A DNA stretch of 63,955 nt, the filler included, from Klebsormidium nitens (Eukaryota > Plantae > Klebsormidiophyceae): NCBI GenBank assembly GCA_000708835.1. It is 6 parts of 6 records of this genome, joined end to end, with 100 filler letters (N's around TTAATTAATTAA, not from the genome) between each part and the next. Parts side by side here need not be neighbours in the genome. Positions count along the whole stretch, not along the records: positions 16,326 to 21,295 come from DF238462.1; 5 more parts are not named here. The stretch is one strand, 5' to 3'. Below, in pieces: positions 1 to 21,295 of the stretch. Each line of letters starts with the position of its first letter. Position 1 is the first letter of the stretch. The position numbers were made by a program, and so were the translations under genes. The notes under the pieces were generated by a model. It was not told the origin of the DNA. It made no database searches and worked only from the letters and a program-made list of their open reading frames with translations.

Positions 1-3000
1 GGGTCAGGTGTCGGCCACCGGGTTAAGCGTAACCGGGGTGGCTTCTCAAGGCGACGGCCTCACTTATAGTGTAACGGTTGTGAGCGATCTGAGGGCTGAC
101 GTTACGGAGAGAACGGTCTGGGTGCAAGAGGGAGCGGTGCAAGACGTGGCCAGGAATCCGAACCAAGCATCGGAAGTTTTGAAGATTAGCTTCGGTAAGC
201 GTGCAATACCTTGAAGGGGCCGGAGCAGTTCAGATTTGGACCCGAAGTGACATTCTGCGGTTTTCATGAATCGTTGAAAGGGCGGCAGGGCTACCGAAGT
301 TCTTTCGTGATCCAGAGTTTGCTTCCTAGAGGCCCTCGTTTGGAGCCGTCTTCGACCTACTTTTGTTCTGAGATTTTTGACACCGGGGCTTCTCGCGGTC
401 CTCAAATGGTCGCTCTTAGGTCAAGGTATTCTCTTCCAGAAGTAATGGATTCCTCTCGTCCAGACCCGTTTCTCCGCCCTATTCAAAAGCTCCATGCGTC
501 GAACATGTTGAGTTACCTCAGCCGAAGCCAATTGAATTCTACATGAGCATTTCTTGTCTCCCACTTCAGGCACCTCCTCGCGCGCCGTGGCCGCGGCCGC
601 GCTCGGCGCGAGGATCGTCTCTAGCGGTCTCGCGACTACGACTGGCATCTCTATTGCGGCGCTTCTTCCCACAGTTCTTCTCCAAGTAGGCGATCTCCTC
701 GGTGCCTGGGCAGGCGGCCTACCGAGCGCATCCCCGGGCGCATCGTCCCCGCGCTTCGCCGCCCGGGGCAATCTACTGGGAATAGTCGGGACGGTGCAGA
801 CGTTCGCGCTGTTCCGGAAGCTGGCCATCCGCCAGTCCGCCGTGTTCCAGGAAGTGACCGGAAGCCTCGCACCGATGGTAAGACTGTGACGTCATCAATG
901 GGATTTGTCATACTGAAAATAAAAGGATTCACGGGAAAAGATTGGATTCTCTGGCATCTTGGAAGCAGCCGGATGCTGGGCTCTTGTGAGATTCCAAGCT
1001 ACAATTGCCTCCTTAGGCATGCCTTCTCAGTTTGGGGTGCTGCGGAAGACATTTTACTCGAACAAAGCATCATCGAAATGTTCCGTGTGCTTTCTTTGCA
1101 TCATACTCAGTTTACGGCAGTGCTGGAGATAAGCGAAGAGGAATCAAGGCGAAACGGACTGAGCTTACTCCGTGAGCCCATCAGTCACAAGCTGTGAGAA
1201 TCAGGAAAGGGAACATTCTGTGTCCAAGTTCCAGCTTCAACTCCGTTCGTTTCATTCTGCTGTCTTTTTTAAAGCTTAACATCGACCTGCTGTCCCTCAA
1301 AGGGAAACTTTTCAACCCTTTATACCTCTCCTCAATCTGCAGGGTCTGGAAAGCCGTTCAAAGCCGTCGCTTGAGGTCGACTCCACTGCTGCCTCCGCGC
1401 TGGCACCGACAGCCTCCGTGACTGGAGTCCGAAGGCGTCTCTTACAGAACGGAACCGGAACAGGCATTTCTGATCCAGATTCGATCCTGACCGAAGGGTG
1501 AGAAACTCTGCATCCTGTGAGACGTCTGCTGACCCGTTATGTCTTCGGATTCAGGGAAGAAGAACGTTGATCGCATTTTTCGCAGACGGTGCCGCTGATT
1601 TGTTGCATGAAGCGGTCGTATCCGTATGAGATCTGAAATGCAGCGGATCCTTTCACTCCATTATCTTGAGGATGTTGATACCCAGGGTACGCCCTAGATT
1701 GCTTTGTTTAGAGCACTGGACCCGGAAGAAGTGCTGCCTTCGTCTCTTCAAAACGAACATAAATGCGCGCCAGTGCTTTGGAGTGGGTTTTCTGGACCAG
1801 CTCTTTCCAATTCATATCATTGCACTTCCTCAATAGATGACATACGTACCCTCTGAATCGACTTTACCAAAGTTGAGCTTGTCTTCGAACGGAGTTTGTC
1901 GATTTGAACTCCAACACACCTCTGTCACTTTCCTCCTGCTACTTTCGCGATCATTTTCAGCAGCACCATGAAGGTCGACACTATCCGCATGGCGCTCAGC
2001 TGGGTTCCTCTCCAGGCTCGTTCTCGTCGTCCTTTCAGAACTTCCGTCGTCCGTAGCGTGCTGGCAAGCTTCTAAAGTCGCTCGCAGCAAACCAAAGCAT
2101 TTCCTCTTCTCTTCTCTAGTTGGCACTCGTCCGGGCTCATTTTCGGACGCGCTCTCATCGTCCTGTCCGCAACGTCCGTCGTCCGGACTGCGGCAGCGTA
2201 TGTTTGGAAGCGTGTGTCCAAACAATCCTTACCGGACCTGCTTCTGTTTCCGAGAGCTGAGCTCCAAGCGGGAGCCTTCTGCTTCTACCCAGTGTCTGTA
2301 GCATGTGCCTCGCTTTTGCAAGGTGAGCTAACGGGGTGCAATACATACAACCAGGTCCCTCTGAAAGAAACATGGGATATCTCAGAGTACTCTTGCAATT
2401 TAGTTCACGTACTATATTGAGAGTCGATTGTAACATGTCCGGTGCCTCTGAAAGAGAAAGGAAACTGAGGTTCAAAGATTGCAGTACTCGAGACCCCGAC
2501 ACGAAACAAGTCAGCCATGTGCTTGAAGCTGCTCACGAATGGCCACCGTACAACGCTCGTCCTCCATTTGATTTGTTTCACGATTCATTTATTCGATGTA
2601 CAGCACTTTGGAGCCATCTTCTTAGCGCGGGGTGGCTTTTTCTTGGAGCTCGCACCTTCAGCTTGCTCTCTGTTCAACCACTTTAGAATTTATGCCTCTG
2701 TGAAGCTCTATAACACATCGATCCAACCTTCTCGTCGCAGGCCACTCAACGACGCATGCCTTTGTCGGGGCACTGCTGCTTCTGTTCATCCCGTGTTCCG
2801 CCATCGTCGTAGTCCTGGGATTCCTTGCAACCCACGTCATACTAGTAAGCCGCGCTATCCCCCCTGCCAGAATCGGTATCACGAACTTTGTACGCCGACC
2901 TATAACTGATGTCATCAGCTTTCTCTTCTCCTCAGTCTCAACTTCGCGCAATCTGGTACGGAACAACTCATTCCGGCTGTAAAGGTGGTTCTCTAGACTA

Positions 3001-5296
3001 TATTTGACCAGGTCCAGACTGTTGCTGGCGGTCAAGGTTTCAGGTTAAGTCACAATCACTGGACCCTCCAGCCCCACAATCCTGATGCATCTCTATATCT
3101 AACCTCTCGCCAGAATCTGTACCAAGCTCTGTACCTTCTTTTCACATGGTCGACTTAAATTGTCTTGGTTGGACCGAAAAGCGCAGATGCGCTTTGCTAT
3201 TCCAGAGAAGCAACCTCTCTCTTAGGAAAATAGCGCGCTGACTTGCAGTCCGGGACTCAAATGATTCAGATGTCTAGGTGAATGAACCCGACGTTACATT
3301 ACTTCATTCGCAGGGATCGGAGGCGCATTTCGAGCCGTCCGGAGATCCTTTCAAGACGCTGACGTGGCGCGGCCGCGCGGCCGCCGCCTGCTTTGGCGCG
3401 CCCTGCGAGGGGCGGTGGACTGACGCGCACCCGGCGTTCAAACGTCCGGCCGGACGATTCGGACTCCTCTTCGAGTCCTTTCGGCCCCCCAGCTGCACTG
3501 GAGTGGGGACCTTATCTGGAAGGGAGACCGCAAATGGAGAAGACGATATAAACGGGCGTCCGCAACTCGGGACCGTTTCCGAGCGGAGTACAGGCGAGAT
3601 GGGACGACTTGAATTGTCCGAAAGCTGTCCGGGACGCACTGGACGGCCGGGTTTGTCCGCGCACGGTGACGAAAGGTCTCAGGAGTCGGACCCAGTTCTG
3701 CTGGGAGCAGGAGTGGGCCGCCGGGTTGCGGACGGTGCGCGCGCGCTTCTCCGGATGCTGCGGACGTGCCACGTGGGCGCAGTACTTACGAAGCGGCTGG
3801 TCTTTGCGGCGCTTCTCGCGGCGCGGGAGCCTCACTTGGCGGGCTCGAACCCGGGGTTGGGTCAAGTGGGCCTTCTCCTGACGACGTCATCGATCTTCCT
3901 TTCCTGGCTGGTGATCGCTAAGCCTTACGTCAGCCAAGCCTTACAAGGCGTTGAGCTGGTTACAGGGATCTTAGAAGTTCTCACGCTGAGCTTGGCGCTG
4001 CTATCTGGCCGAGCGGAGCGGAAGGCGTTCCGGACCGGAACCGCAAACGGAACCGCAGGCACCGGAAGCTTGACGGAAGGAGAGAGGCGGCTGAGCGCAG
4101 GGATGCTGGCGCTTCAAATCTTGGCGGTTGGGGTGCAGACGGGGTATCAGTGGTGGGCAGCATTTGTTGGGCTGAAAGCGCATCGGCAGATGTGGAAGGA
4201 GAGAAGAGAACAACAAACAGAGAAGGAAACGCAAGTCGGGCGATTTTCGCAAACTTTCCGGAACGGGGACGAACGTTCGGCGTCAAAGAGAGGAGTTGCC
4301 AAAGGCCGGAGGGACCTTCGATCCGTTTTGGGATTGCGGGGGCGGCGAGGTGCTGGACGCAAGGAAGGTAGCGACGAGGCAAGCTCGGAAGAGGCGCCTA
4401 CGAGACCGGAAACGGTTGCAAAAAGCGGGCCAGTGCCACGTGTAACCCACGCCAGGAGGCGTAATCAAAGACAATCGGAAAGGCTTTCCAACCTCAGGAA
4501 CGAGAATGATTTTGAAAGCAACTGGGGCTGTGGGGCTTCAGATGTGGACCCGTCGCTGACGCAGTGGTTGCAGGAAGATGTGGAGAGCAAGACCGGAATC
4601 TTGAGCGGTTCGGAACGGGTTAAGAGGAACCGGGAATCCCCGTCAGTGAGGCAGTTTGTTCGAGGAGATGCGGAACTGGGCGCGTCTGGTGGGCAGTCAC
4701 GAAAGTTGCGCACAGTGGAGGACAGGGAAAAGGGAGCGCGCGCAGAACGCGTCGAACGGAAGGGACGAGGTTGGGAAGGAGGAACGGAACGGAAGCAGGG
4801 CAGGACGGAACGCAAGGTTGACAGGAGACCGAGTGTTAGAGCCACAAACCTCTTCGCAAGCAGCGGCGGCGAAGGGAAGGTGAACCTGCGAATGGGTCCG
4901 CAGCAGTCGGACCGCCCTGCAAGGTCCCGTCAAATGATTGAACCGGACGACGAGGGAACGAGTGTCTCGCCCCACAGCGGTGGGCAGGAGATAGTCGCAA
5001 AGCCTCACTTCGAGGAGATAACGGAAGCATCGGCACGCGCGAGCGAGGTCAAGCGCAAAAGCGCGCGCGCGGCGCGGCTGGGGCGGCTCAAGAGCCGGCG
5101 CAAGGTGACGGCGACCGCCACCATGACGTACTTCGTCGTGTCCGAATCGGACGAATCGGAGCTGTCCGATGGTGAGGATCGGACGGCGGGGGTGAACGTG
5201 CGGCTCGAGGTTCGCCGAAGTATGGTGGCGAGTTTTACATTCAAGACAGAGCCAGAGAGTGTTGACAAGGATTGGTACCAGCGTCGAGTTGGATAA
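1..5296 (+). CDS. Multi-exon membrane protein, 5'-truncated: bacterial Ig-like repeat, multi-pass TM region of the uncharacterised plant Ig-like/TRP-like family, and a long basic disordered C-tail
   Basis: The exon at about 1-196 ends VQEGAVQDVARNPNQASEVLKISF|gtaagc, an Ig-like D-x-A-x-N-x-N-x-A-S motif. Exon 570-877 (cag|...atg|gtaaga) has GNLLGIVGTVQTFALFRKLAI. Probable exons lie at about 1343-1498 (RRRLLQ) and 2220-2320 (LPDLLLFPRAEL...LLQG|gtgag). The terminal exon 3314-5296 has GRW...FGLLFESFRPP and hydrophobic helices (LLLTTSSIFLSWLVIAKPY...). Intermediate exon boundaries are only partly resolved. Confidence 0.65.
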
Positions 5297-6910
5297 ACTA
5301 GGGCGACGTGTGCTCTCCTCTGATATGAAAGAGAGGGCTTCGGCAAAATACGGTGGAGGAGGTACCCAAGTTGTGTAAATATAAGCTCGCAGCTCAGCCA
5401 TGTAAAGAGAACTGTTCATCTGTTCAGCGTCACATCGGATCAACTGCTGGTATGATAACGCGTTGAATGAAGTTGTCCAGCTGTAGCTGCCTTGCTGCGA
5501 ACCCGAGTCACGAGTCACGTACGAAATTGAGATTAAGGACTGAGAGGAAATCTCCGATCATTTCAGGAATCGAGTTGCCACTTTCCAGCCAATAAGAGTC
5601 CTTCCAATACTAGCACAGCTATTTAAGATCGTTTCGATCGAAAGGCCGCATTAAGTGGCACGTGCTTTGTGCTATTCACGGAAACGTGTTTGCGCTAAAT
5701 AGTGAATCATATGCGACAACCAAACATGAGCAAGCCGTAGCACACAAGTAGCTATACGGTTCATGACAGGTGCCCTACGTACAGACAACGTAGTCATAAA
5801 CTAGATACATGGCGGCTGCATCAGAGTGCACAATAATCGTCACAGTGCTGCTACTTGGTCAAATATCGTAGCTCATCCGCAGGCTCCGAGGACTAAGGCT
5901 TAAGAAAGGGCCTCAGGCACCACCTCGGGCGCCCATGGTGCGTGGTAATTAACCCGCAGCGCGACTACGGATCGTCTGATTCGTTCCAGTCTTGAGACAA
6001 AGGATGGTGATTACATCCAACGCGATGCATGCAAGTGCGGTGTATATTATCCGGCTGCTGCTTTTTGGCGCCAATAGCCAGAACCTAGCGCTTACATTGA
6101 AACCATGACAGACAGATATCCTACGTTTTGCCGACCGTTCTTCCATTTCCTTCCAAACAGCCTGCCCACCGTACTAGCTCCATGTCCGCCCGTTTCAAGT
6201 TGATCGCCTTCAGCTCGGCCCTGACCTCCCGGGCGTCGTCATCGGGTTCGAGCATGACGACAGCAAGGGCCGGCACCCCGCTTCCCTGTGATCCGGCCTG
6301 GGGCCGTCCATTTCAGGTAAGCATTTGAGCATTTGTGCCTTCTGCAGAAACGGGACCTTCCTGGCTTTCTTTGTTCCGTTCTTTCACCGTTTCGATTCCT
6401 TCCCTTCTAATCCGAGCTCCGGATTCACATGCCAGTGTTCTCTCTGATCCAGCATCACCTCAGCATCATTTCTAGCTTCTTCGCCTCAAGAAGTTGGGAG
6501 AATGACCAACTACTCTTAATCTCGCGCTCTAGATCAGGCCCCCGGATTTGTCGGCGACCTCACCAGAAGACCAGAACATCTTCCCGCAGCTCCTCCAAGC
6601 CCTGGACACTAGTTCCAATGATGGTCCCCAGTTGGCTTCCGCCCCTCTTCCGCCAGAGTCGTCTTTGCCCCACAGCCCGGGCTCAAAGCAGAATCCGGCG
6701 CTTCGCACAATGCTCTTCCTGAACCATCATCTCGCGATACCATCTTCCATCAGTTCCATCGCTCGTCCGTCTTGCTCTAAGTACTGCCCGCCATGGGTTG
6801 CTGTCTCGCGTCCCTGACGCCATCTTGAAGTTCAAGTTTCGCCGCGGCGACCAATGCAATGCGGCCAACGGGTAATACCTAGCTATACCGGAGTGTACGT
6901 GGGAAAATAA

Positions 6911-8224
6911 CCCTTTGTCGGCGGGTGTTGCCTTTTGTTGCCTTTCTTTAACACTCTATGAAAACGCGTGGCAACAACACCCAAAAGCGAACCCTTTGAC
7001 CCGAAACTTCGGAAGGAGGTGTCAATCGACCCAAAGAAAAATACAAAAAAAAAAAAAATATTTTGGGGGGTCCCGGGGGGTTTTGTACGAGTACACTCGG
7101 GTACCCCTATGTTGCCCTGTTGCCCTAGTGGACGGTACCTANNNNNNNNNNNNNNNNNNNNNNNNNNNNNNNNNNNNNNNNNNNNNNNNNNNNNNNNNNN
7201 NNNNNNNNNNNNNNNNNNNNNNNNNNNNNNNNNNNNNNNNNNNNNNNNNNNNNNNNNNNNNNNNNNNNNNNNNNNNNNNNNNNNNNNNNNNNNNNNNNNN
7301 NNNNNNNNNNNNNNNNNNNNNNNNNNNNNNNNNNNNNNNNNNNNNNNNNNNNNNNNNNNNNNNNNNNNNNNNNNNNNNNNNNNNNNNNNNNNNNNNNNNN
7401 NNNNNNNNNNNNNNNNNNNNNNNNNNNNNNNNNNNNNNNNNNNNNNNNNNNNNNNNNNNNNNNNNNNNNNNNNNNNNNNNNNNNNNNNNNNNNNNNNNNN
7501 NNNNNNNNNNNNNNNNNNNNNNNNNNNNNNNNNNNNNNNNNNNNNNNNNNNNNNNNNNNNNNNNNNNNNNNNNNNNNNNNNNNNNNNNNNNNNNNNNNNN
7601 NNNNNNNNNNNNNNNNNNNNNNNNNNNNNNNNNNNNNNNNNNNNNNNNNNNNNNNNNNNNNNNNNNNNNNNNNNNNNNNNNNNNNNNNNNNNNNNNNNNN
7701 NNNNNNNNNNNNNNNNNNNNNNNNNNNNNNNNNNNNNNNNNNNNNNNNNNNNNNNNNNNNNNNNNNNNNNNNNNNNNNNNNNNNNNNNNNNNNNNNNNNN
7801 NNNNNNNNNNNNNNNNNNNNNNNNNNNNNNNNNNNNNNNNNNNNNNNNNNNNNNNNNNNNNNNNNNNNNNNNNNNNNNNNNNNNNNNNNNNNNNNNNNNN
7901 NNNNNNNNNNNNNNNNNNNNNNNNNNNNNNNNNNNNNNNNNNNNNNNNNNNNNNNNNNNNNNNNNNNNNNNNNNNNNNNNNNNNNNNNNNNNNNNNNNNN
8001 NNNNNNNNNNNNNNNNNNNNNNNNNNNNNNNNNNNNNNNNNNNNNNNNNNCATCAGTGCGCGGAAGTGTTTGACTGCTACCGTCGCGGACCGGCGTGCCG
8101 GACCCGTCAGTATTTTTCATCGGCGCCGTCCGCTCGATCGATCGGACGGTCAATTTGATTTTTGCGATTATCGCGAAAATTCACGTACGGTAGAATTGAC
8201 CGAAAGTTCCCCGCCGACAAAGGG
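6911..8224. mobile_element. piggyBac-like TIR element; interior mostly hidden by an N gap
   Basis: Perfect 15-bp terminal inverted repeat: CCCTTTGTCGGCGGG (6911-6925) and CCCGCCGACAAAGGG (8210-8224). It is flanked by TTAA on the right (8225-8228) and ATAA on the left (6907-6910). No transposase is visible. Confidence 0.55.
7142..8050. other. Scaffold gap (909 N)
   Basis: Run of N; ORFs crossing it are artefacts. Confidence 0.99.
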
Positions 8225-8490
8225 TTAAAGGAATACCTATGGTCGCTGAGACGTTTCATGGTGTCACAGAAGATCGACGGTGAGAGGAGGCCACGCCCGC
8301 AATCGTAAGGTAGCAGCCGCCCGCCCCCGCTAGCAAATGGTCCTAGCAAATGCAATGTGGCCTGCTCATGCTTGCAAGCACGCCCTCCCGAAGTCCAGGA
8401 AACGTAATCTGTGCGAAGTCCGCCTGCATTCTATTGCGCTTCGTGTCTGCAATTGTTTTTGAAGACAGCGGCAACATCAGGTAACACAGG

Positions 8491-11118
8491 ATGTCTTCTG
8501 GCCCACCGCCTGACATTGTGGACACTGCTGCGTCCGACAAGGATCTTGACACCGACCATCTTCAGGTAATGTGCCCCACTTATTGCTCAGAGTCCACATT
8601 CTCCATCTTTTGTGGAGTCGGGCAATAAGCCCACAATTGAGGCTGCATTAGATAAATGAGGGGATTTTCATGCGCTGCATGTCTGCAACTGGTGTTGCTT
8701 TCAACACCTTCCTAGCATGCAGGTAGCACTTAGCAATGAGACTTTGTCTAGCCGGGAGCATGCCTTTTTTTAAATGCCAATCAACGCAATGAGTGCATGT
8801 ATAAAAGATACCTGTGTCGCCGTTGGTTTGACAGTTGATGTAGGTGGAGGTCATGGACTCAGCATTGCACATTCTAAAACAATTTCTGGCTGCTTTTGGA
8901 ACTTGGCACCATTTGACAAGCTTGGAAGGGGCATTCGCTCGCTGAGGTTGAGCTTGAAGCGCCACATTACTAGCAGGGACTCGGTACGTCCAGCAGTCCA
9001 TTCCAGACTTTGAAATACTTCCACCACGTCAGAAAATGAAGCGTGAGCTCTTTACAACAGTGAGAGGTGCCTGACCAGGCAGCTCTTGTGCTGTCTGCCA
9101 CCTCTGCATTTGAACCAGAATCTGCGACGTCACCCTATACTAAAGTCAGGACGACATACTTGCCCTTGTAGAAATGTGCCCGGATTTGGTTGGAAGGCCT
9201 GCTGAAGGAGTCGTTGGACCCCGACAAAACGCTCCTGGAGGTGCTGCAGGATGGGGAGATACTGTGAGTCTCTGCTTGCCCGCTTGACTGGACCCAGTCC
9301 ATTTGGCAGTGGCAGTCAACATTTGCACATGCTTCAGGCGCCTCTTGCAGAGCTGAGATGGAGACAAGTGTCCTGTTCTACCGCATCTGCTACTGACTCT
9401 TCTCAACGGGGCGTTGATCGCAAATTCAAGATTCTCAACGGGGCGTTGATGGCCAATTCAAGGTTCTCCGAAAGCCTTCGGTGAACTGAACGCCTTGGTT
9501 CAGATGCAATCTGTTTGAAGGCCATGAGTGTACTAATGCAACGAGCTGGCGACAGAAAACAAGCAACTCTTACCTTTTGCAGGTTACGCGTTGCAAGGGG
9601 CTTGAAGACAGCAAAGGCCTCTGGGCCAGAGGCGGCGAGAGCTTCGTATGCCAAGAAGGGCGCCAACTCACGCTCGTCACAGAAGCTTTCTTATCTAGCT
9701 TACAACAATGTAGAGTATTTTCTGAATGTGAGTGGCACACCCCAACATTACTTTCTCGATCGTCCACCCTTTTTGGCGATGGTAGGCCTAATCTTTGATG
9801 GCCTATGGCGCCTTGTTCGTGCGAACCTTTCCTTTCTTTCCTGATCGGCAGGGCAAGAAAGACACTCTGCGACAATCCATTCCTATTCGCTAGCTGTGAT
9901 GAGGACCCCACTAGCGAGGGTGCACCTTGTGTCGTTACACCCCTGGACTCTGAAATCACCACTTTTCTTATACAGCGAACCAGACTGCCCATCTCACCCG
10001 GCCTCAATGGAGTTAAAACACTGACTTGCATCTCCAAACTTCCTGTGCTGCAGTTCTGCCGTGAGGTCGGCCTGAACGACATCCACCTGTTCTCCCCCTC
10101 GGACCTGGTAGAGAGCAAGGACGTGCGCCGGGTCTGCGTCTGCCTGCGCATGCTATCCAGCAAGGTCAAAGATGCAGTGGTATAGTCCCGGCAACCCGCC
10201 GCCTTCTGAGTTTCGTAGTCCATCGCAACAGAAATTCAATCTTTGCAAACTTGGATTTTGGAGAATTTGCACACCGTACGGAGCCAGTTCTCAGCAACAA
10301 TCCCGCTTCTGCATCCCAGGTCGGATCAGTATCGCGTGTTGTTTTTACCTTCTTTTGAAAGCGAAGGATCTGCTTTCCTGAACAGCTCAGCAGATGCTCA
10401 AGACTCGGTGCCCAATGTTGGCACAATGCTGTGCTTGTTTCAGGGCTTTAGGCCTCCATTGCCTGGCCTCCACCTAATCCGTTTAGTGTTGGTCGTACAT
10501 TCCCCAAGTCAGGCGGGTCTCAAAGAATGACTTTTCTCTTACTTCGTATCCTCTGAATGTACTGAAGCCTTCGAAGAAACAACAAAGCCGGAAAAGTAGG
10601 CGGGTTCGGAAGGGCGCAAGCAGCTGTGGTCTACAGCGACCTTCTCCTTTTGCACGACCTATATTCTCTGGATTATGCCTGCCCATAACGGACTCCCTCG
10701 CACTTTGTGCCAAAAGGTTTCTGGATTTCGTACTTGTTTGACAACATGGTCGTCCCACAGCGAGAGTGTTGAGCCGCATCTACTCGCCAAGTCAACATTC
10801 CACTGGTCCACTGCATCTGTAGAAGAAAATATCATCGTGCTCTGCCCACATGTTGCGACTCTCTTCTACTCATTTGCTTTCCTCCAGACAAGGCCACCGC
10901 AAGCGCGTTTTCCTTCGCACGCGTCGCAAATTGGGCTTCGCATTCATTCCCCGAAGCACAGCGTAAGTGGCTGTTCTTCGCAGGCGGTGTCGTTCGAGGA
11001 CGTGGAGAGCCTGCAGAAGATGCGGCGGCGGCCGTCTACCAAAGTGGGCGACATCCTCGAGACCTTCCAGCCCCGGCGACCCACCGAGGATGCCGCAGTC
11101 TCGGAGCCCCCCGCCAAG
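8491..11118 (+). CDS. Calponin-homology (CH) domain protein of the plant-type uncharacterised CH family; 3' end unresolved, possibly extending to about 12613
   Basis: Phase-compatible GT-AG exons 8491-8565, 9172-9263, 9583-about 9727, 10054-10164 and 10984-11118. They give ...KCARIWLEGLLKESL...LLEVLQDGEILLRVARGL...AYNNVEYFLNFCREVGLNDIHLFSPSDLVESKDVRRVCVCLRMLSSK, which has the CH hallmarks WL, L.DG.IL, N...FL..C...G and LF...DL. Confidence 0.8.
9400..9468. repeat. 32-bp tandem repeat (about 2.2 copies) in an intron of the CH gene
   Basis: ttctcaacggggcgttgatcgcaaattcaaga / ttctcaacggggcgttgatggccaattcaagg / ttctc. Each unit holds the mini-hairpin TCAACG-GGG-CGTTGA. Confidence 0.8.
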
Positions 11119-13660
11119 GTGAGCTCTCGACCGGCGCCTGTTTCAAGTCCAAGGATAGTCATGGTTTCGTGAATTGACAAGGCATGCACTCGTCATTGTT
11201 GTTTGCTTGTGTTGTAGTTGTAAAGGCAGCCTGTCTTGTCTTGACCAGGTGTATTCTTGTGACCATGTCGCAGGGAAACCATGTGAGCCAGGACTAAGCA
11301 TCTTTGCTTCAATTGCCTCTTTCCGAGACTTCGCGAAGCTATCGCTCCTCAGCTTGTGAGCCCGCCTTATGCATTCAAGAGGTGAGGACACGGACTTGAA
11401 GCTCCTCACTTTCTTTCTGGTGCTATGGCAGTCTTTACCTGCGCTCACTCTCAGGTTTTCCTCGTCAGGCAAACGGAGTTTCTTCGCGGCGAGATAGCTT
11501 AAGTGGTACCTCTCGGCTACCAGATTCTGACTCGTCAAAAGCCAATAGATCGGACGACTTGGGTTTCCCGCTGTGGGCTCCTGTGGCGGCAGGACTGCTG
11601 GCGGTGGTGGGAATCTTCCTTGCGAGGAGGGCAGGGTAAGCAACTGCTGTCAATCCGGATCCCCTTTTCTTCTTCTGGCCTTACCTGTCGTCTTTCTTTG
11701 CGTTCGCCCCTGACTACACTCCTTTTCTTTCGTCTTTTTTCTCCCTTCTTTGCGTTGTCCCTCGACTGCCCTCCTGGTGAGCAGGAAGCTCTGTGGCCTT
11801 ACTGTGAGATGCATCCTCGCTCTCCTTGGTCGTCGAGAATGACAGAAATCTGATGGCGTGCTTCGATGCCTGGAATACCTAGCGATTCTCAAGCGGTGCC
11901 GCGCTATTCAGAGCATTGAGAAACGCAGGGACGTCAGGATCGATGGGTGGGCTGTTCTTGATGTACACCTCAAGGCTAGAGCGAGCCCGCCAGCGGTTGG
12001 CAGTCTGGCTGAGACTTAGGTGCATCTGGAGTCGATGTTGCGTCCACTTTTGGCAGTGCAAACTCCGGATCTCCTCTCTGTCGACTCCGCCGGAGACTAT
12101 TCTCGTACCAGCGCGCTCGTCAAGGTCGTACCCCTGTTGTTTGACCGGAATGACGTTGTAACGCCAAGCAACATGAATCCTTTTTGAGGACTTCGGCGTC
12201 GCTTCGTGCCTTCTTTGGCTGTGCAAGGTGCTTCCTTTCAGTTACCAGATACCAGGCTGAGTTCGGAACTGGTGCCCCTGCAGGAAGAAAAAGCCGGCCA
12301 AAACTCCATTGCCGTTGTCAGAGTACGAGATCCAAAAAGGGGATACATTGATACACATATCGGGACGGGTTGGGAAGGCCCACTGGGAAGACCTTGTGAA
12401 GTTGAACCCGACAATCGAAAACCCAGATTTGATCTACCCAAAAGACAAGTTAAAGCTATAGCGCAACTGGCAATGTGCATTTGTTGGTGTTGGGAGGTCA
12501 GCATATTGTGGTCAGCGCTTGTCAAAGTCATGGCGTCCTTATTCAAGGCTGTGTTTGGATCGCACCTGTCAGCCGGATTCGAACCAATAAGAAGTGTTTT
12601 ACTTGATCTTTGATTCGTTCACCTGTGCAAGCTTCCTATATCTGCAACAGCGCACTACAACATGTGGCTGATCCTGTGTGCACGATCTTAGCATGTGCCA
12701 CCACTATCAAAATAGCATGAGCAGTCTGAAATTAGAGCTTGGTGATGGTTTGGTCCCGGTGATGGAAAAGCACTGCAGCCGCCAAAGTTGGTTTCAGGCC
12801 GGTCGGCCTGACTTGACCGTGGCTCAGTTGCCGCAGCTGCTGATTGAACGTAATCACCAACACATTCGAGTCGATTTATAACCCACCTACCCCGCCAGTC
12901 TTTAGTAAGATCGTCACTCGGATCATGGTTGCATGCACCTTTGAGCTCTATATATAGTCAATGACACATTGCACGCGCTGCATATATGCGTTCCAGCGCC
13001 AGCTGATGGTGCATTGTCCTAGGCGCTGCTGCACATATCACGGTGTTGCAGTATTTTGTGCGATGATCACGCTTTCCACACACATATATGTATAAAGCTG
13101 GCCATGACCGTCGGTGCCCGCTCATGGGCGGGGCCCAAATCACATTTCTAAGTCCTAATCTGGCGCGCGCGCGTACATCTGGTTTTGTAGTATGATCAAG
13201 GCGGCTTCATGTACACACAATTCCACTACTCAGTGAGGGCCGCAGCTAGCTGCCGAATACGTGGAACACGGAATTAAGCAGATCTGTGCACATACTTGAC
13301 CGTAAAGGCCGGTGCCACTCAGCCGATGCATTCGCGTGATATTGCTGCGTTTGCAACCTAGGTAGTTGCACATAGATCCAGTATCTGTTCAACATGTTGC
13401 ACGCCTGGTTACCCATTTGCGGCCAACTTAGGTTTGATGCACTGGCGATCGCCGCTTTGCATTCCAACAGCCCATGGTGAGGCTCAAGGTTGTAAACTAT
13501 TTTTCACTATGAGGTTGCCTATTCAACACGTAGTCTTCCAGGACACCCCCGGTGTCCAACCCTTAAAGCACAGCTTCTGACTTAATTGCAAAGTAAAAAC
13601 ACCCCTCTAGCTTATTCCTCAGCAAGAAGTTACCGTTAAAGCCGCAGACAGACGACAGTA

Positions 13661-15739
13661 TCAAACTCTCAGGATCTGCAGTTTGCTCCCAAACGCGACC
13701 GCCACCCAATCCGGCTGAGTGGATGACCATTGCAGCTGGTTCACCTCTGCCCCTGCTGTGTACGCGAGAATGGGGTCCAGGCCCCCGTCCACGGGCGTGG
13801 CCATCGACGACAGGTCCCAGATGAGCGCCTGGGAGTCGTCCCCCGCTGTGCAAATATGGCATGAGCTGTGCGGCGCCCAAGCCACAGCGTTGACACACGC
13901 TTGGTGCCGCTGCAGCTCCGCGACGGGCAGCGTCGGGAACCGGATGTCGAGCACGACCACCTTGGAGCTATCCATGAGGATCGTCGCCATGTAGCGAGGG
14001 TCCTGCTTATTCCAGCCCAACCGCAGGAGCGGGGTCTCGGGCTGCGGGCTCTCGTAGATGATCGTCGAGTGCTCCTTGTCGCGCAGGTCAAACACGCGCA
14101 CGGAGCCGTCGGCAGAGACGGACGCAAACACGCCGACGCCTCCCCACGCTATGTCATAGACCTCCTTGTCGTGGGCAATCAACTGTGTGTCCACCACCTC
14201 CTTCTCGATATCCCAAATCGTGCACGTCGTGTCAATGCTGCATGGCGAAAGGGGGGAAAGTTGAGGAGTGCTGTTTCTCAAGAGCAGAGGTGCACGCATT
14301 AAGAAGCGGGTTTTGAGTCTACCCCGCTGTTTGGCATCAGGGTACATCCAGTCTGGGTCCGAGAATGCCTTACCCCTCTCCATAAAGTGCAAACAACCCG
14401 CTAACTCTGAATGTTTTTGTCCTCAATTGCATGTCAGCAGAATGAAAGTTTAACAGCGTCTGTGGATAAAATCAGGATAACATGATATGTTGGCCATGAG
14501 ACGAGGTGGCCAGTGCTTTTGGTGCAAAAATATCTTCAGGAGAGAGCTTGGTGTCAAAAGCAGATGCCAAAGAGGTTTGTAGAGTGAGACAGACCCTAAC
14601 TCCTGTCAGACCCCGTGAGTCAGCCCTCCCGTTGCAAGCCGATGGTGGCCAAGGAAACTATGACTATGTGGCAAGAAGTTGAGCACAAAGCAGCCCTCCT
14701 GGGCTCTAAGGCAGCAACTGACCACTCTAACCATGACAACTAGCCAACTCTTGTAGCCTCACCAACAAGCAGAAAGACCTCCAAGTTGAGGGGATAAGGG
14801 CCGCGTGCCGTAGCGCAGACCATCCCAGCCAGACACAACACCAAGAATGAATCATACAAGGGCATGCGAAACCGTATCCGTAGTGAACAAGCAGCCTGCT
14901 TTGGCCCGTTGCTCAATAATGCGGGGGTACACCAAGGAAACTAAAGAAGGCGCCGTCAGGTCTTGCCAACTAAAATCAAGGACGGCTGGACATTAGGCAG
15001 CAGAATAGCAGAAATACCATCTGCTATGCTCAGTCTGCAGTGCCTTGTTCCCCATACCCCCATTTTCCCACTTTCTAGCAGGAACAGTAAACCTACTTTA
15101 CCATGCTCTGTCTGAGGTGCAGTGCTAGCCAAACATGAGGTGCAACCAAAACCCAACAGGGTCTTCGTAGACACAACCATGGGCACTCTATCCTGCAACT
15201 CTGTTTCTCCTCTGCAGCTTGTGTTGGCTCAAACCCTCAACAAGCGTCCCGGTTCACTTGCCCAGATGATTCGGGCGAAACCCTCACCTGGAAGTCCCCA
15301 ACCGCCGCGGCTCTGACTCATTCCAGTCAAACGACGTTAGCGGCGCGCAGAATTCGCTGTTTTTATTGTTGTTGAGCAGGCTCTTCATCTCAATGCCGTC
15401 CTCATTGATTTGCCAGATGCGCAGGAAGTCGCCCGTGGTGGCCATCAGATCCGGTTTTTGGCACTCCTTATCCGGGATGAACATGATCTTGGTAGGGGGG
15501 TACGGGTGCTGCACCGTGAGCTTTGGATCGACGTAAAAGTGGCCCGTCTCATCGTTGAGCTGCACAATCTCCAGGTGGTTGTTGTACTCCTCGATGAAGC
15601 TCCCGATGCCTATCCGAAATTTCTTGTCCCGCCGGACACTCCAGTTCATTGCGTACACCAGCCATGGCGCCTCGTAAGTGTGGATCTCTGCCCGCTTATT
15701 CCCAAAGGTCAGGTCGCTTCCCGGGAAGGCCTCCGACAT
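13661..15739 (-). CDS. LWD1: WD40 protein of the LWD1/LWD2-AN11-TTG1/DCAF7 family, 2 exons
   Basis: Exon 15739-15288 ([25 protein letters not shown]...[10 protein letters not shown]...LGTS) splices GT-AG in phase 2 to exon 14237-13661 ([34 protein letters not shown]...KLQILRV*). This matches the family consensus closely. Confidence 0.97.
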
Positions 15740-16325: not shown

Positions 16326-16437
16326 AACGCTGTGTTTCAACAAACCTTCCTCAACCTCCAAAGCAATTCTTGAACAGCCCATCAACAATTGCGGCTTTTC
16401 CCCCGCTTTTCCATAATCTACACAATTACGTGCTCAC

Positions 16438-16688
16438 CTATCATCGATCGATGTTTGGGTCGCGCCCTGAAGGACTTCCTTGCACAGGCGGCGGAAAGCC
16501 GCCTTGGGCAGCAGCAGGTCCACAGACTTCTGATACTTCCTAATCTCGCGCACTGCGACAATGCCCGGCCGGTGCTTCTTGGGCTTCATGACCTGGCGCG
16601 GCGTCGTCCGGACAGCCTGCGCGGCCACGGCGCTCCGCGGGGAGAGCCCCCCGGTGCTCTTCCTTGCAATCTGCTTCGAGCGCGCCAT
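16438..16688 (-). CDS. Highly divergent histone H3 variant, exon 1 only (contig ends in the intron); CenH3-like features
   Basis: [18 protein letters not shown]...[52 protein letters not shown], then a GTGAG donor at 16437. The H3 N-tail start and alphaN/alpha1 motifs are recognisable. Loop 1 is 3 aa longer than in canonical H3. Confidence 0.85.
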
Positions 16689-17370
16689 GTTTTTGAGCGG
16701 AAAAGAGCTGTGCTAAAGAAAAGTCAAACGGGCGCCTTGGAAGAAAAGGCCGTTGAAGAATTACGAAAGAGTGAAGGCCTGCAACTCGTGGGCGGCCGAG
16801 TACTGTGTACAGCCTGCGCTAGAAGACTTCAACTTCCCAATCACGCAATACTGCCACCCTTCGAGCCAGTCGAAGTTCGAGGCTACCAGAAGAAGCATGA
16901 TTAAGTTAAGCTGACTCGGCGTGGCGTGGGTCCGAGTCGAACCAGTGCGCAAACACTCCAATTTCGTCTCCAAAGACTCGATGAACGGAAGTCGACCGCC
17001 GGTGACGATCGCACGACAGAGTTGCATGCAGTGTGACCTATGATTGTCAATTCCAAGGCTTGAAATGTGTCAAAGCGGCGCTTCGACGGTCGTTGGAAGG
17101 TCCAATCACGAACTTTGCAACGCTGATTCATCCTCCACTTCGATAAGCATCTTGAAATCCCGCGGCGCTTTGAAATTGAAGTTGCGGCGAGGTCAAGAGA
17201 GGCCGAAAACTAGCGCTTAAGCACTCATATGCCGCTTGTCGACTGAAGGGTCCATCTTTACGAGTCCTTGCGCCTAAGTCAACCTGCTGTGCACTAGCAG
17301 TACTCTGCTGCAAGCTGCGCTAGAGTCTTCCTCAACTGCTCCAAGTCTTGCCACCTCAATCTCAAGCAAC

Positions 17371-18017
17371 ATGGCCCGCATGAAGCAAACCGCAAGGCGC
17401 AGCACCGGTGGGAAGGCCCCACGGAAGGCACTCGCCACCAAAGCGTGTAGGAAAAGCGCGCCTACAACGGGTGGCAACAGAAAGCCCCATAGGTATCGGC
17501 CGGGCACTGTTGCGCTGCGCGAAATTCGGAAGTACCAGAAGTCAACCGACTATCTCATCAAAAAGCTGCCCTTTTAGCGGATGGTCAGGGAGGTCGCCCA
17601 GGATTTCAAAACGGACTTGTAAGTCCACACAAAACTGCGAGATAATGATCTCTTCATTTCCCCCTCTGCTCTCCCCTTTCACAATCTATTGGTGGCGGTG
17701 CATGACTGCCGCTTTGATGTCATCTTGCAATTCTCGTAGCTGAATAAAGTTGCGCGCAGCACCTTCTTGTGATTGCCCGACTTCCCATCATTTCGATTGT
17801 GAGAAGCATTGAAAGACTTTGCTCGTTGATGATCACTTGAGCTTTCCCGTGCAGGCGCTTTCAAGCTCAAGCGATCGAGACCCTCCAAGAAGCTGCGGAG
17901 TCCCACCTGGTGATGCGGTTTCAAGATGCAAATCTGTGCGCCATCCACGCTAAGAGGGTGACCATCATGCCCAAAGACATGCAATTGGCAAAGCGCCTTA
18001 GCGAAAGGGAACGCTAA
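17371..18017 (+). pseudogene. Divergent H3.3-like histone gene with a premature TAG
   Basis: Exon 17371-17618, intron (gtaagt...gtgcag) and exon 17855-18017 rebuild a full-length H3: [19 protein letters not shown]...[31 protein letters not shown]...[24 protein letters not shown] at 17575-17577 replaces Q68. T31 and Y41 are plant H3.3 signatures. Confidence 0.88.
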
Positions 18018-18590
18018 GGCTTAGGGGAAGCGCCGGCGCTTAGATGAGAATTTTGGGCTTAGGATAGCGTGATCAGTTGGCCACTTTGGGATATTCTTGG
18101 TTTTGACGGTACCTAACTTCTGTGCTAGTACGTTTTGGATTCCCGTAGAGGCCTCTATTGATAGATCAATCCGAAGTAGTGACCTCGAATGAGGAGATGT
18201 CCTTTCGTTCTTGGGAAGCAGACATTTGATGTACCTAACCTCTTGCATTAAATGGCCGGCTGAATTATCAATGTGGCAAAGGAATCTCTCTCAACATGTG
18301 ACTACGTGCCTATTGCAAATCCGATTTGGCGCGGGCTCTCCGGTGGCTGTGTGCAAAATCATGTGATAGGATCGCGTGCGCCTTCATGATCTCTGGTACG
18401 TTTTATAGCGCCGATTGCGCGCAACATTCAATATTCAACCCATGGCTTAGGTTTTAAAATCTCATGCGCAATACAAGTTCCCACAAGGAACAACCGTCTG
18501 CATCAGTAAAATTTCTGTTGTAAGCAGGTGGTGTTGGAAAACACCAGGTTTTTAGCAGGAACAAGGTTACGGTAATGCCTGCTTGTGCCC

Positions 18591-19249
18591 TCATATGCAT
18601 GAGTCGAGATAGGCGAGCTCCTGGTTCCACACGTCAATCTCAATCCCAAGCATTGGGTCACCATCCACCTTGGCAAGTGACCTTTCCGCTCTGCGACGCT
18701 TCAAGATCATGTCTGTTGCAATAGAATGAAAACCCCCCCTAATTTGCCATGGCGTCCACTTCTTGTACGGATACCAAGCGGGCAGCTCTGCCACCTTTGC
18801 CATGATCATGGCCTCATCCAGAGGGCCAAGACCTTCATCTTGACAAAGGTCTGGACAGCTCGCCTCCATTTGGGGTGATGGGTCTTCCACCAATCGTCGT
18901 CAAGCAGCCTCCTCACTTTGTTGCCACCCCTGCGTCTCCATATTTTACCATCTTTTGTTACTGTTATTTTAAGTGACTCACTGGTGGCAATGCTGAGGAT
19001 TTCCCCCTCAACCCATTCTTTTTGAACGATTGGGCACTTTGCTACTTCATGCTTGCACGTCTCTCTGGCCTCCCTCAGCTTCTGTGCAACTGCCTTGCTA
19101 TGCGCCCGTACGGGCCCGGTAGGACACGACACCCAGTAACTTGGGGTGGTACCAGGCCTTCTCCTCTTCCACGGTATAAGAATCCCCGTGCTGCGCGGCG
19201 TCTGAACGGGCGCGGCAGAACACAGCGAAGAAGGGGAAGGGAGACGCAT
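18591..19249 (-). pseudogene. Frameshifted paralogue of the unknown Trp-rich protein at 19677-20231
   Basis: ORFs 18806-19291 and 18591-18893 together align with the + strand copy (WVSCPTGP...KHEV...EWVEGEILSI...ITVTKDG...WWK..HP.WRRAVQ.FVK [fs] DEGLGPLD.A.IM.K.AELPAW). A 1-nt deletion near 18843 switches the frame. Confidence 0.7.
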
Positions 19250-19466
19250 GGCGGCTGATGTTTGGCGGACTGCCTTCACCTTGTCGCTCAAGTAGTAGAA
19301 GTATCCGCTTCAAGCTTTCAAGTTGATTCAAGGCATTCAAGTTCCATGGCATGGTTGAGATGTCGAGGCGCCAGACTTGGCGCCAAAAACGCTCAATCTG
19401 TGCCGTCCGTTGTGCCACGCTGGCAAAATCTGCTTCGTGCGATTCAAAAGTGTATGGACAACTGCC

Positions 19467-19532
19467 AGCTTGGCACAGCGGACGACCGAGATCGCTCGCA
19501 GCTTGGCACAACGGACGACCGAGATCGCTCGC
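19467..19532. repeat. 33-bp tandem repeat x2
   Basis: agcttggcacagcggacgaccgagatcgctcgc / agcttggcacaacggacgaccgagatcgctcgc, located between the two paralogues. Confidence 0.9.
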
Positions 19533-19676
19533 CGCTGCCGCCAAGTTTGTAGGTATAAGTACAAATTTGAAAGTTGTTCAAATGGTAGGTTGAGATTGAC
19601 CAGTGCTCAGAATATTGAACTTCAAATCCCGTTTCCCTCCCCATGCTTGAAGGCGCCCCAGCAACAAGCAGCCGTC

Positions 19677-20231
19677 ATGCCTTTCGCCGCCCCTTTTTCT
19701 TGGACGTGGTGCCCCGCTGGGCCCATCCGTTCCTCAGACAGCTCCAAGAAAGATGATGACCTGATTTCGAGAAGCTTCAGGGAGAGGACCAAGCACGAAG
19801 TATCTAAGAGCCTGCTCTTGCAAGAACAATGGGTAAAGGGTGAAATTCTGAGCATCACCACCACTGAGTCACTTGTGATCACAGTGACAAAAGATGGGAC
19901 AATCTGGGAACAGATTGGCAACAAACCAAAGAAGCAACTTTCAGAAGCATGGTGGAAGGCCAAGCACCCCGCATGGAGGCGAGCTGTGCAGCAGTTTGTG
20001 AAGGATAAGGGCCTTGGCCCTCTAGATGGGGCCGTCATCATGTCAAAGTTGGCAGAGCTGCCCGCGTGGTTTCCTCGTAAGGAGACATCATCTCCGCACA
20101 GGATCAAGTGGTTTCACGAGAATGCACGCCGCATGCTGCGTCGCAGAGCGGGCATGAAGGCGAGCGAGGCGCTTCCCGAATACATCATTCTTGCTCTCAG
20201 TAAGAAGACACTCCAGGCTGCAAGTAAATGA
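19677..20231 (+). CDS. Hypothetical Trp-rich protein (about 184 aa from ATG 19677); family not recognised
   Basis: Open frame whose coding nature is supported by amino-acid-level conservation with the diverged inverted paralogue at 18591-19249. Confidence 0.6.
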   Translation: MPFAAPFSWTWCPAGPIRSSDSSKKDDDLISRSFRERTKHEVSKSLLLQEQWVKGEILSITTTESLVITVTKDGTIWEQIGNKPKKQLSEAWWKAKHPAWRRAVQQFVKDKGLGPLDGAVIMSKLAELPAWFPRKETSSPHRIKWFHENARRMLRRRAGMKASEALPEYIILALSKKTLQAASK

Positions 20232-20499
20232 GTGCCATAAGCAAGCGTGTGACCTTCAGGTCTACGTCCCCAAAAACTGGTGTTTCCAAACAACGCCTTC
20301 CTGTGAAGAAACTTTCAATGGTGAAAGACCCCGCTTCTTAGGGAAAGCTTTCAGATTTAGGTTGAGAGCATCTCCTGGAGCCCTCCACTTCGCTTCTTAC
20401 ATCAGTTAAATCAATAGTGCGTTCCCAAGAAGCAGCATACATGTCAACATCCACCGCACTGAGACCGTTCTTTTTGAATAGTTCCTACTGCATAGGACA

Positions 20500-21229
20500 T
20501 TCATTGCGCGCGCACTGAATTATTGGACGAGTTGGCGTGGAGCGTGCTTGCGAGACTGCCCAAGACGTTCAGTACCCTCAAAACAATCCTAGAGGCTTCA
20601 AAGAGCGCCATAAGCTCGGTGAATGCAATCTGGCCGAAGCTCTTGGTGCATGAGCAGGGGTTTGAGGAGACGCCTAAGGAAAAGGGCGGCGGTGGGCGGG
20701 ACTCCGTTGTGGCTTATGTGGCCGGGCGGAAAGGAAGCAAGGAGAAGGGCCACGGCAGGGATGAGAGCGGGGCCAAAGGGCTCAAGTGCTATACTTGTGA
20801 GGAGTTCGGTCACATTGATTGGAAGTGCAGCAAGCCAGAAACAAGCCGAAGCAGAAGAAGGAGGTGAAACCTCCCAAGGGTGTGGCCTTCAGCGTCATTG
20901 AGGGGGTGTCTACCGACGAGTGGCTCGTCGATTCGGGTAGCTCTTAACAACTAACCGGGGATAAGAGCCTATTTGAGACCCTCGCAATGTTCGGGGGGAG
21001 TGGCCGAGAATGCCCGTTCGGAGACAAGGGAACCGGATGGGCAGAGGGGAGCGGCTCGGTAGAGTTGCGGTGTGTGCGACACCGACCGGAGAAAGCCTGG
21101 TCTCTCTTGCAAAACGTGATGTATGTCCCGGGGGTGGCGGCGAATTTGATCTCGGTGAGCGAGGCAATCGAGGTCGCGTTTGCACTGTTCAAGGAGAACG
21201 GTGTTGAAACACAGCGTTGTTGGAAGTGA
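20500..21229 (+). mobile_element. Degenerate Ty1/Copia LTR-retrotransposon gag-protease fragment
   Basis: CCHC knuckle CYTCEEFGHIDWKC. After a frameshift come the Copia protease motif EWLVDSGSS*QLTGDKSLF (in-frame TAA) and LQNVMYVPGVAANLISV. Confidence 0.85.
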
Positions 21230-21295
21230 TATTCAATCAATCAAGTTCACACAATGTATATGGAGTGTTCCGAGTCACGGCCTATCTTTAGGTCT

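Follow-up and report, generated by a model that had tools for sequence, protein, structure and literature searches.

The scaffold DF238462.1 of the charophyte alga Klebsormidium nitens encodes the first exon of a histone H3-like protein in which a methionine takes the place of K36. The question raised by this locus is whether it represents an unusual centromeric histone (CenH3), a natural inhibitor of H3K36 methylation, a lineage-specific H3 variant or the remnant of an H3 gene. The genome deposit of strain NIES-2285 (Klebsormidium flaccidum, now nitens) comprises DF236950-DF238763 and spans DF238462.1 (PMC4052687). The scaffold was analyzed as part of a longer stretch of DNA of 63,955 nucleotides, filler included, which is here termed the window and along which all positions are counted unless another contig is named. 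The H3-like gene, here referred to as gene A, is best read as an intron-bearing H3 paralogue of an atypical and lineage-specific type, in which the reading frame was maintained while the middle of the tail was remodelled. In the data at hand it is silent, and it may be inactive; the probability of this reading is put at roughly 0.5. Gene A is probably neither a methyltransferase trap nor a centromeric histone.

Contig depth and sequence checks were performed with Logan contigs of sequencing runs mapped on the window piece, and the coordinates of all features are compiled in Table 1. The scaffold is tiny and unplaced, and gene A on the minus strand and another H3 gene on the plus strand (gene B) are arranged head to head, followed by repeats. 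The GC content at third codon positions (GC3) was 0.82 for exon 1 of gene A and 0.71 for exon 1 of gene B, compared to 0.52 for the intergenic DNA.

Table 1. Features of scaffold DF238462.1 in coordinates of the window
Feature	Position	Strand	Remarks
DF238462.1	16326-21295		whole 4970-bp scaffold, assembly GCA_000708835.1
Gene A intron start (GTGAGC...)	16326..16437	-	111-112 nt, to scaffold end; GC 0.44
Gene A exon 1	16438..16688	-	ATG 16688-16686; 83 codons + 2 nt; donor AG/GTGAGC at 16438/16437
Met36 codon ATG (V35-M36-K37-P38)	16587-16589	-	covered by contigs of runs X1 and X3, no difference
Divergent intergenic region between gene A and gene B	16689..17370	.	682 bp
Gene B exon 1	17371..17618	+	82 codons + 2 nt; H3 gene
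Gene B intron	17619..17854	+	GT-AG (GTAAGT ... TGCAG), phase 2, splits L82 codon
Gene B exon 2	17855..18017	+	alpha-2 to C-terminus; TAA 18015-18017
Repetitive flank	18300..21295	.	from contig depth; context only, outside gene
Inverted ORF pair	18806-19291; 19377-20231	-; +	45% identity, E = 2e-34
CCHC zinc-knuckle ORF	20523-20867		C-Y-T-C-E-E-F-G-H-x-x-W-K-C
Ty1/copia Pol beta-barrel fragment	20987-21226		PF22936, E = 1.9e-7

The assembly's own gene model for gene A comprises 83 amino acids and ends at the same terminal base as the exon described here. Residues 1-75 of the protein were aligned to H3 1-78 with E = 1.4e-19 (HMMER, PDB chains), and the Pfam family Histone (PF00125) was found with E = 1.3e-9. 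The top PDB matches were engineered H3K36M constructs, because the V-M-K-P motif fits them. Compared to ordinary algal H3, 47 of the 75 aligned residues are identical, with 11 of 13 identities in the H3 N-terminal motif A-R-T-K-Q-T-A-R-K-S-T-G-G and 13 of 16 in the 16-residue helix motif. In H3 numbering, the tail reads A1 R2 S3 K4 Q5 I6 A7 R8 K9 S10 T11 G12 G13 L14 S15 P16 R17, continues via S18 and Q23 to R26 T27 T28, and after one gap, P30 R31 and two further gaps reaches Q34 V35 M36, followed by K37 P38 K39 K40 H41 R42 P43. The H3 residues retained in the tail are R2, K4, R8, K9, S10, T11, G12, G13, P16, R17, R26, P30, V35, K37, P38, R42 and P43, and three residues are missing between 28 and 34. 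Over positions 1-43 the tail has 22 identities to H3 with only 3 gap positions. The description given in an earlier note on this DNA, namely an H3-like tail that keeps K4 and K9/S10 and reads L14, S18, Q23 and T27, with a deletion of three amino acids, V-M-K-P at 35-38 and Q68R, was thus reproduced by the HMMER alignment to H3 among the PDB chains. The same alignment keeps the Met at 36, and this position is fixed because the spacing from the Met to P43-G44 is ungapped. Over 16496-16712 the sequence is also covered by a contig from another run of the same sample, which shows no difference.

In the histone fold, the changes of gene A in alpha-1 are R63P, L65A, P66A and Q68R. In loop 1, 9 residues lie between Q76 and the split codon, compared to 5 in H3 and in gene B, and the end of the loop is located in exon 2. 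A loop 1 longer by three residues had been proposed before; the extension itself was recovered, and its size is +3 in that previous alignment and +4 if the intron is homologous to that of gene B. The final Arg then read in the loop cannot be kept as a fixed residue, since the last 'R' of 'IDDR' spans the donor (AG plus the intron G), so that the true residue is Arg or Ser depending on the first base of exon 2. Exon 1 encodes alpha-N, alpha-1 and most of L1 only, while the positions decisive for a CenH3, namely 84 (where W or Y would stand for F84), 107 (A, C or S for T107) and the CATD (L1 plus alpha-2), belong to exon 2. The latter is located beyond the scaffold, because the scaffold ends inside the intron, and its absence, noted previously, was verified also past the scaffold end, where the corresponding DNA contig (probable source run) extends just 10 nt more. 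A candidate exon 2 reading I-A-L-E-V-E-E-G-L-L-K-H-S-V after a possible 69-nt intron was rejected: given a GC3 of approximately 0.5 and only two identities to H3 alpha-2, the in-frame stretch I-A-L-E-V-E-E-G-L-L was taken as intron.

The neighbouring gene B was analyzed by searching its exons separately against Pfam, and the Histone family was found over 17856-18014 of exon 2 (E = 1.7e-17). Exon 1 of gene B is identical to ordinary algal H3 at 65 of 82 residues. It carries an in-frame TAG at 17575-17577, the Q68 position of H3 (a CAG to TAG type of change), which was read in the probable source run only, as X3 contigs do not reach there. Further changes are K9R and K36R. The gene has T31, Y41 and the intron, with Q at position 87 and E at position 90. 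Gene B is without annotation in the assembly, and we read it as a putative pseudogene. Plant H3.3-type genes have introns and canonical H3.1 genes do not. Intron position and phase are common to gene B and the donor of gene A, and both genes share the scaffold, the H3.3-like intron-bearing type and the loss of K36 (R in gene B, M in gene A). However, gene B is approximately 21% diverged in exon 1 and yet has a premature TAG, whereas gene A is approximately 37% diverged in its alignable part and shows no stop, in-frame indels and clustered substitutions. The codon comparison of the two genes resulted in a dS of 1.14, a dN of 0.38 and a ratio of 0.33, and from these values the pair is regarded as old paralogues and not as a recent duplicate. 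The 682-bp spacer between them contains two exact CCAATCACG boxes on the plus strand (16837-16845 and 17102-17110), while 0.06 copies were expected and none of 100 shuffles gave two. With a putative regulatory role, these copies may be CCAAT-box elements that both genes share in a bidirectional histone promoter. An Rfam search of the piece gave zero matches, the histone 3′ stem-loop included.

In order to place gene A among known histones, an exhaustive HMMER search was performed against 1.84 billion cluster representatives, in which the gene A protein is its own singleton. All other matches in this set have 49-64% identity, nearly all of them being ordinary H3 at 56-57%, and nothing in it was more closely related than ordinary H3 (57-64% identity). 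A word search gave 7 candidates, every one an ordinary or plant H3-like protein with at most 55% identity to gene A, a scan of JGI metagenomes for kin of gene A resulted in one 43% match to a degenerate plant-like H3 and nothing closer, and a search of the ESM Atlas returned H3 fragments only. An orthologue of gene A was accordingly found neither among the 1.84 billion representatives nor in the JGI metagenomes. In a tree of the N-terminal half, gene A has the longest branch (0.69, compared to a median of 0.03 and 0.18 for gene B) and clusters with other long branches only. Among 153 H3-like representatives, R63 is retained in 146, Q68 in 145 and K36 in 142, with Pro at position 63 and Met at position 36 occurring in one each, and the combination of changes found in gene A is unique within this set. 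The earlier suggestion of a lineage-specific H3 variant is supported by this orphan long branch within H3 together with the non-random distribution of the substitutions described below.

One protein with 61% identity, P0021, was considered as an orthologue and not counted, as its grouping with gene A occurs only within a weakly supported cluster of long branches (support 0.66) and its exon 2 is nearest to ordinary H3. P0021 and gene A have T3S, T45I, I62L, Q68R, V71C and A75L in common. P0021 is a member of a metagenome family with several copies, characterised by K36P, W at position 84 and a loop-1 insertion of approximately 35 residues. This family of H3 variants of a eukaryote was observed in the JGI metagenome 3300060284 (L002 373-1389, L004 6001-6501) and comprises the proteins P0021, P0155, P0156, P0036, P0157 and P0158. 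Their tail is H3-like, P or S stands for K36, R or A for Q68 and W for F84 of H3, and the conserved insertion ends in D-D-K-D-T-x-G-K-V. At L002 1903-2223 the variant gene is followed by another H3-like gene, which has Q68A and in which a segment of the tail is duplicated. Additionally, an intronless, AT-rich, degenerate H3-like ORF with a partly deleted alpha-N was observed on the JGI contig Ga0228710_1000992 (L003 3001-3370). This ORF probably represents a pseudogene of a plant H3, and its start with T3S and T6I as in gene A is likely a coincidence. Of the words sampled from 16326-17370, 5-18% occur in runs X5-X19, which comprise runs labelled as other organisms as well as soil or rhizosphere metagenomes; these runs could include other Klebsormidium strains and might carry a locus orthologous to gene A.

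The substitutions in gene A are unevenly distributed, as 19 of 30 positions are changed in 14-43 compared to 11 of 46 in 1-13 plus 44-76 (Fisher p = 0.0008, with the boundaries set after the alignment had been seen). The replacements in the fold are mostly conservative (T45I, L48V, I62L, V71C, R72K, I74V), and all two or three indels are multiples of three. Clustering, conservative replacements and in-frame indels indicate that gene A was constrained for the greater part of its divergence. Moreover, its 83 codons are free of pseudogene marks such as a premature stop, a frameshift or a lost splice site, and the donor AG/GTGAGC is a good consensus. These observations stand against the alternative that gene A is a decaying relic of an old H3 pair in a repeat-rich region, in which Met36 and the lost lysines would be the result of drift, and this alternative is considered possible but doubtful. 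It can draw on the replacement of core residues (R63P, P66A, F78A, Y41H), on the TAG-carrying, unannotated gene B, on copia and other repeats in the flank, and on the missing orthologue and the longest branch in the tree, and the ratio of 0.33 between the two genes would fit a long constrained phase followed by decay. When neutral drift was simulated to the amino-acid divergence of gene A, no stop was present in 19-27% of the runs, so that the open 83-codon frame is weak evidence. The GC3 of gene A is still above that of gene B exon 1; simulated drift from 0.82 ends at 0.67-0.73, and the GC3 value does not separate selection from drift.

With respect to expression, the gene A stretch was contained in none of the indexed RNA runs, and two probable RNA runs of the species had no contig anywhere on the piece, the kinds of these runs being guessed and rare transcripts being lost from contigs. 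This result fits the decay of gene A as well, and was counted against the reading as an H3 variant together with the pseudogene neighbour, the tiny repeat-flanked scaffold, the missing orthologue and the 19-27% of stop-free drift. For comparison, the atypical Arabidopsis H3.14 is nearly silent in normal growth until stress occurs (PMC12591220).

A centromeric identity of gene A, as proposed in the earlier note, has to be weighed on the fold and on the tail separately. Two features by which a CenH3 is recognized, a replaced Q68 and a longer loop 1, are both present in gene A, and R63P, which results in L-L-L-P-K-A-A-F, adds a third resemblance, since Pro63 occurs in a single one of the 153 H3-like representatives but in many CenH3s. 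Dataset EV1 of PMC5579357 contains Pro63 (L-[IL]-P) in CENH3 of Arabidopsis, rice, Aquilegia, Amborella and Physcomitrella as well as in CenH3s of Naegleria, Acanthamoeba, Plasmodium, Toxoplasma, Perkinsus and Dictyostelium, and in most of these Pro63 proteins Q68 is replaced and loop 1 is longer. The fold side of gene A exon 1 is thus truly CenH3-like and resembles CENP-A and plant CENH3 (HTR12) in the replaced Q68, the longer loop 1 and Pro63 in the context L-L-[IL]-P. The tail differs from these proteins, as that of gene A is alignable to H3 along its whole length and is three residues shorter instead of longer, while a CenH3 tail is expected to be unalignable to H3 or to other CenH3s. Green-lineage CENH3 tails diverge after approximately 6 residues and are longer, although an A-R-K-S-T-G tail is kept by some proteins of the CenpA set (Acanthamoeba, Bigelowiella; all Dataset EV1, PMC5579357). 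An H3-alignable and shorter tail indicates a recent origin from an H3 gene and not orthology with plant CENH3. Furthermore, an essential CenH3 is expected in the RNA of any growing culture, and no contig of gene A was found in the two probable RNA runs, and gene A is paired with a pseudogene on an unplaced 5-kb scaffold. Searching the literature for a CENH3 of K. nitens gave no result, and K. flaccidum is absent from the ortholog files of PMC5579357. In summary of both sides, the fold part of the CenH3 proposal stood and the tail part did not, and it is unlikely that gene A is the CenH3 of Klebsormidium, or a newly derived one, with an unusual H3-like tail.

The second functional proposal was that gene A could act as a natural K36M-type 'oncohistone', which traps and inhibits H3K36 methyltransferases of the SET2/SETD2 family in trans. 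Gene A resembles the human H3.3 K36M oncohistone in having Met36 in a V-M-K-P context: the Met is located exactly at 36, V35, K37 and P38 are kept, and P38 is needed for trapping (PMC5335568), and Met at this position is found in only one other of the 153 H3-like representatives. However, SETD2 binds the H3 segment A29-R42, of which G33-G34 pass through a narrow tunnel that fits glycine only (PMC4973290). Gene A has R and Q in the two places before V35 and not G33-G34, its A29-V35 segment is shortened by the three residues missing from the tail, and H39, R40 and Y41 are changed to K, K and H. The double mutant G34R/K36M shows poor SETD2 binding, stabilisation and inhibition in vitro, and in fission yeast it causes less Set2 binding and restores H3K36me3 on wild-type histones (PMC5335568). 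As G34R abolishes the inhibition by K36M and gene A carries R/Q at 33/34, a built-in inhibitor is unlikely, and the missing G33-G34 undercut the K36M analogy. The human H3.3 K36M is moreover a somatic mutation, whereas gene A is a germline gene; K36 is one of five lost lysines, which fits a general remodelling and not a targeted change; and zero transcript contigs were obtained from the two probable RNA runs, whose kinds are guessed and whose contigs drop rare transcripts. The proposal of a built-in inhibitor of K36 methylation is therefore disfavoured, and such trapping by gene A is regarded as highly improbable. By analogy to the human and yeast enzymes, gene A would have a tail without a methylatable K36 and yet would be unlikely to trap the enzyme. 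In practical terms, this cautions against taking a protein for an inhibitor on the basis of Met at position 36 alone.

According to the preferred reading, i.e. a lineage-specific H3 paralogue with a remodelled middle tail, gene A would be exon 1 of an intron-bearing, plant-H3.3-like paralogue beside the old, now broken paralogue gene B. It would have diverged far while the reading frame, the first 13 tail residues (with K4 and R8-K9-S10) and alpha-N/alpha-1 stayed constrained, and residues 14-43 would have been remodelled with the loss of K14, K18, K23, K27 and K36. Provided that the gene is expressed and has an intact exon 2, it would give nucleosomes with an H3 tail closed to acetylation and methylation at these five lysines, and this unmarkable tail would act in cis, like H3.15 and H3.10 at K27. 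The contact with DNA and the choice of chaperone would probably change through R63P, P66A, Q68R and the three or four additional residues in loop 1. The silence in the RNA data may be condition-specific, or the gene may already be inactive. The sequence of gene A, its placement within H3, its orphan status, its pattern of substitutions and its genomic context were observed, whereas a function of gene A, now or recently, and all of these functional consequences are what we infer.

The closest comparison is offered by the Arabidopsis proteins H3.14, H3.15 and H3.10/MGH3, which like gene A are lineage-specific H3 paralogues beside H3.1, H3.3 and CENH3. In H3.15 K27 is lost and in H3.10 its context is altered, so that the tail is refractory in cis. 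Plant and algal genomes contain many divergent H3 copies of the kind of gene A. In contrast to the atypical H3s of Arabidopsis, gene A is far more diverged (approximately 57-63% identity to H3 over exon 1), has lost five lysines at once, is changed in alpha-1 and loop 1, is incomplete, and has no known orthologue or expression. The expression of the Arabidopsis proteins is itself very low or restricted (stress, gametophyte; for H3.14 see PMC12591220). A more far-reaching view would be a germline H3 with Met36, without K14/K18/K23/K27 and with a CenH3-like alpha-1 and loop 1, which comes into use in a cell state that is rarely entered (stress, zoospore or a cryptic sexual stage) and either damps H3K36 methylation or serves as a recently born centromere- or chromatin-state-specific H3; this combination is held to be very unlikely. 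If gene A is functional, it would be a natural experiment offered by an alga closely related to land plants, in which an H3 keeps the K4 and K9/S10 modules while being barred from acetylation at K14/18/23 and methylation at K27/K36, and it could reveal the use of an 'unmarkable' nucleosome.

The remaining part of the scaffold is repetitive. The summed contig depth ranges from 25 to 15,500 in the flank from approximately 18300 onwards, compared to 15 over the H3 pair, and the final 150 nt of the scaffold reach approximately 15,500. The two inverted ORFs matched no Pfam family and have the motif W-V-x-G-E-I-L-S-I-x-T-x-E-S-L-x-I-T-V-T-K-D-G in common, and the longer one opens with a short tandem peptide repeat, S-L-A-Q-R-T-T-E-I-A-R, in two copies. 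Given their location in DNA of raised depth, they probably belong to an uncharacterised protein family of a Klebsormidium repeat or mobile element. The adjacent region 20523-21295 is a degenerate fragment of a Ty1/copia-type retrotransposon, in which the zinc knuckle, a D-S-G-S-S motif and the Pol beta-barrel are located in different frames.
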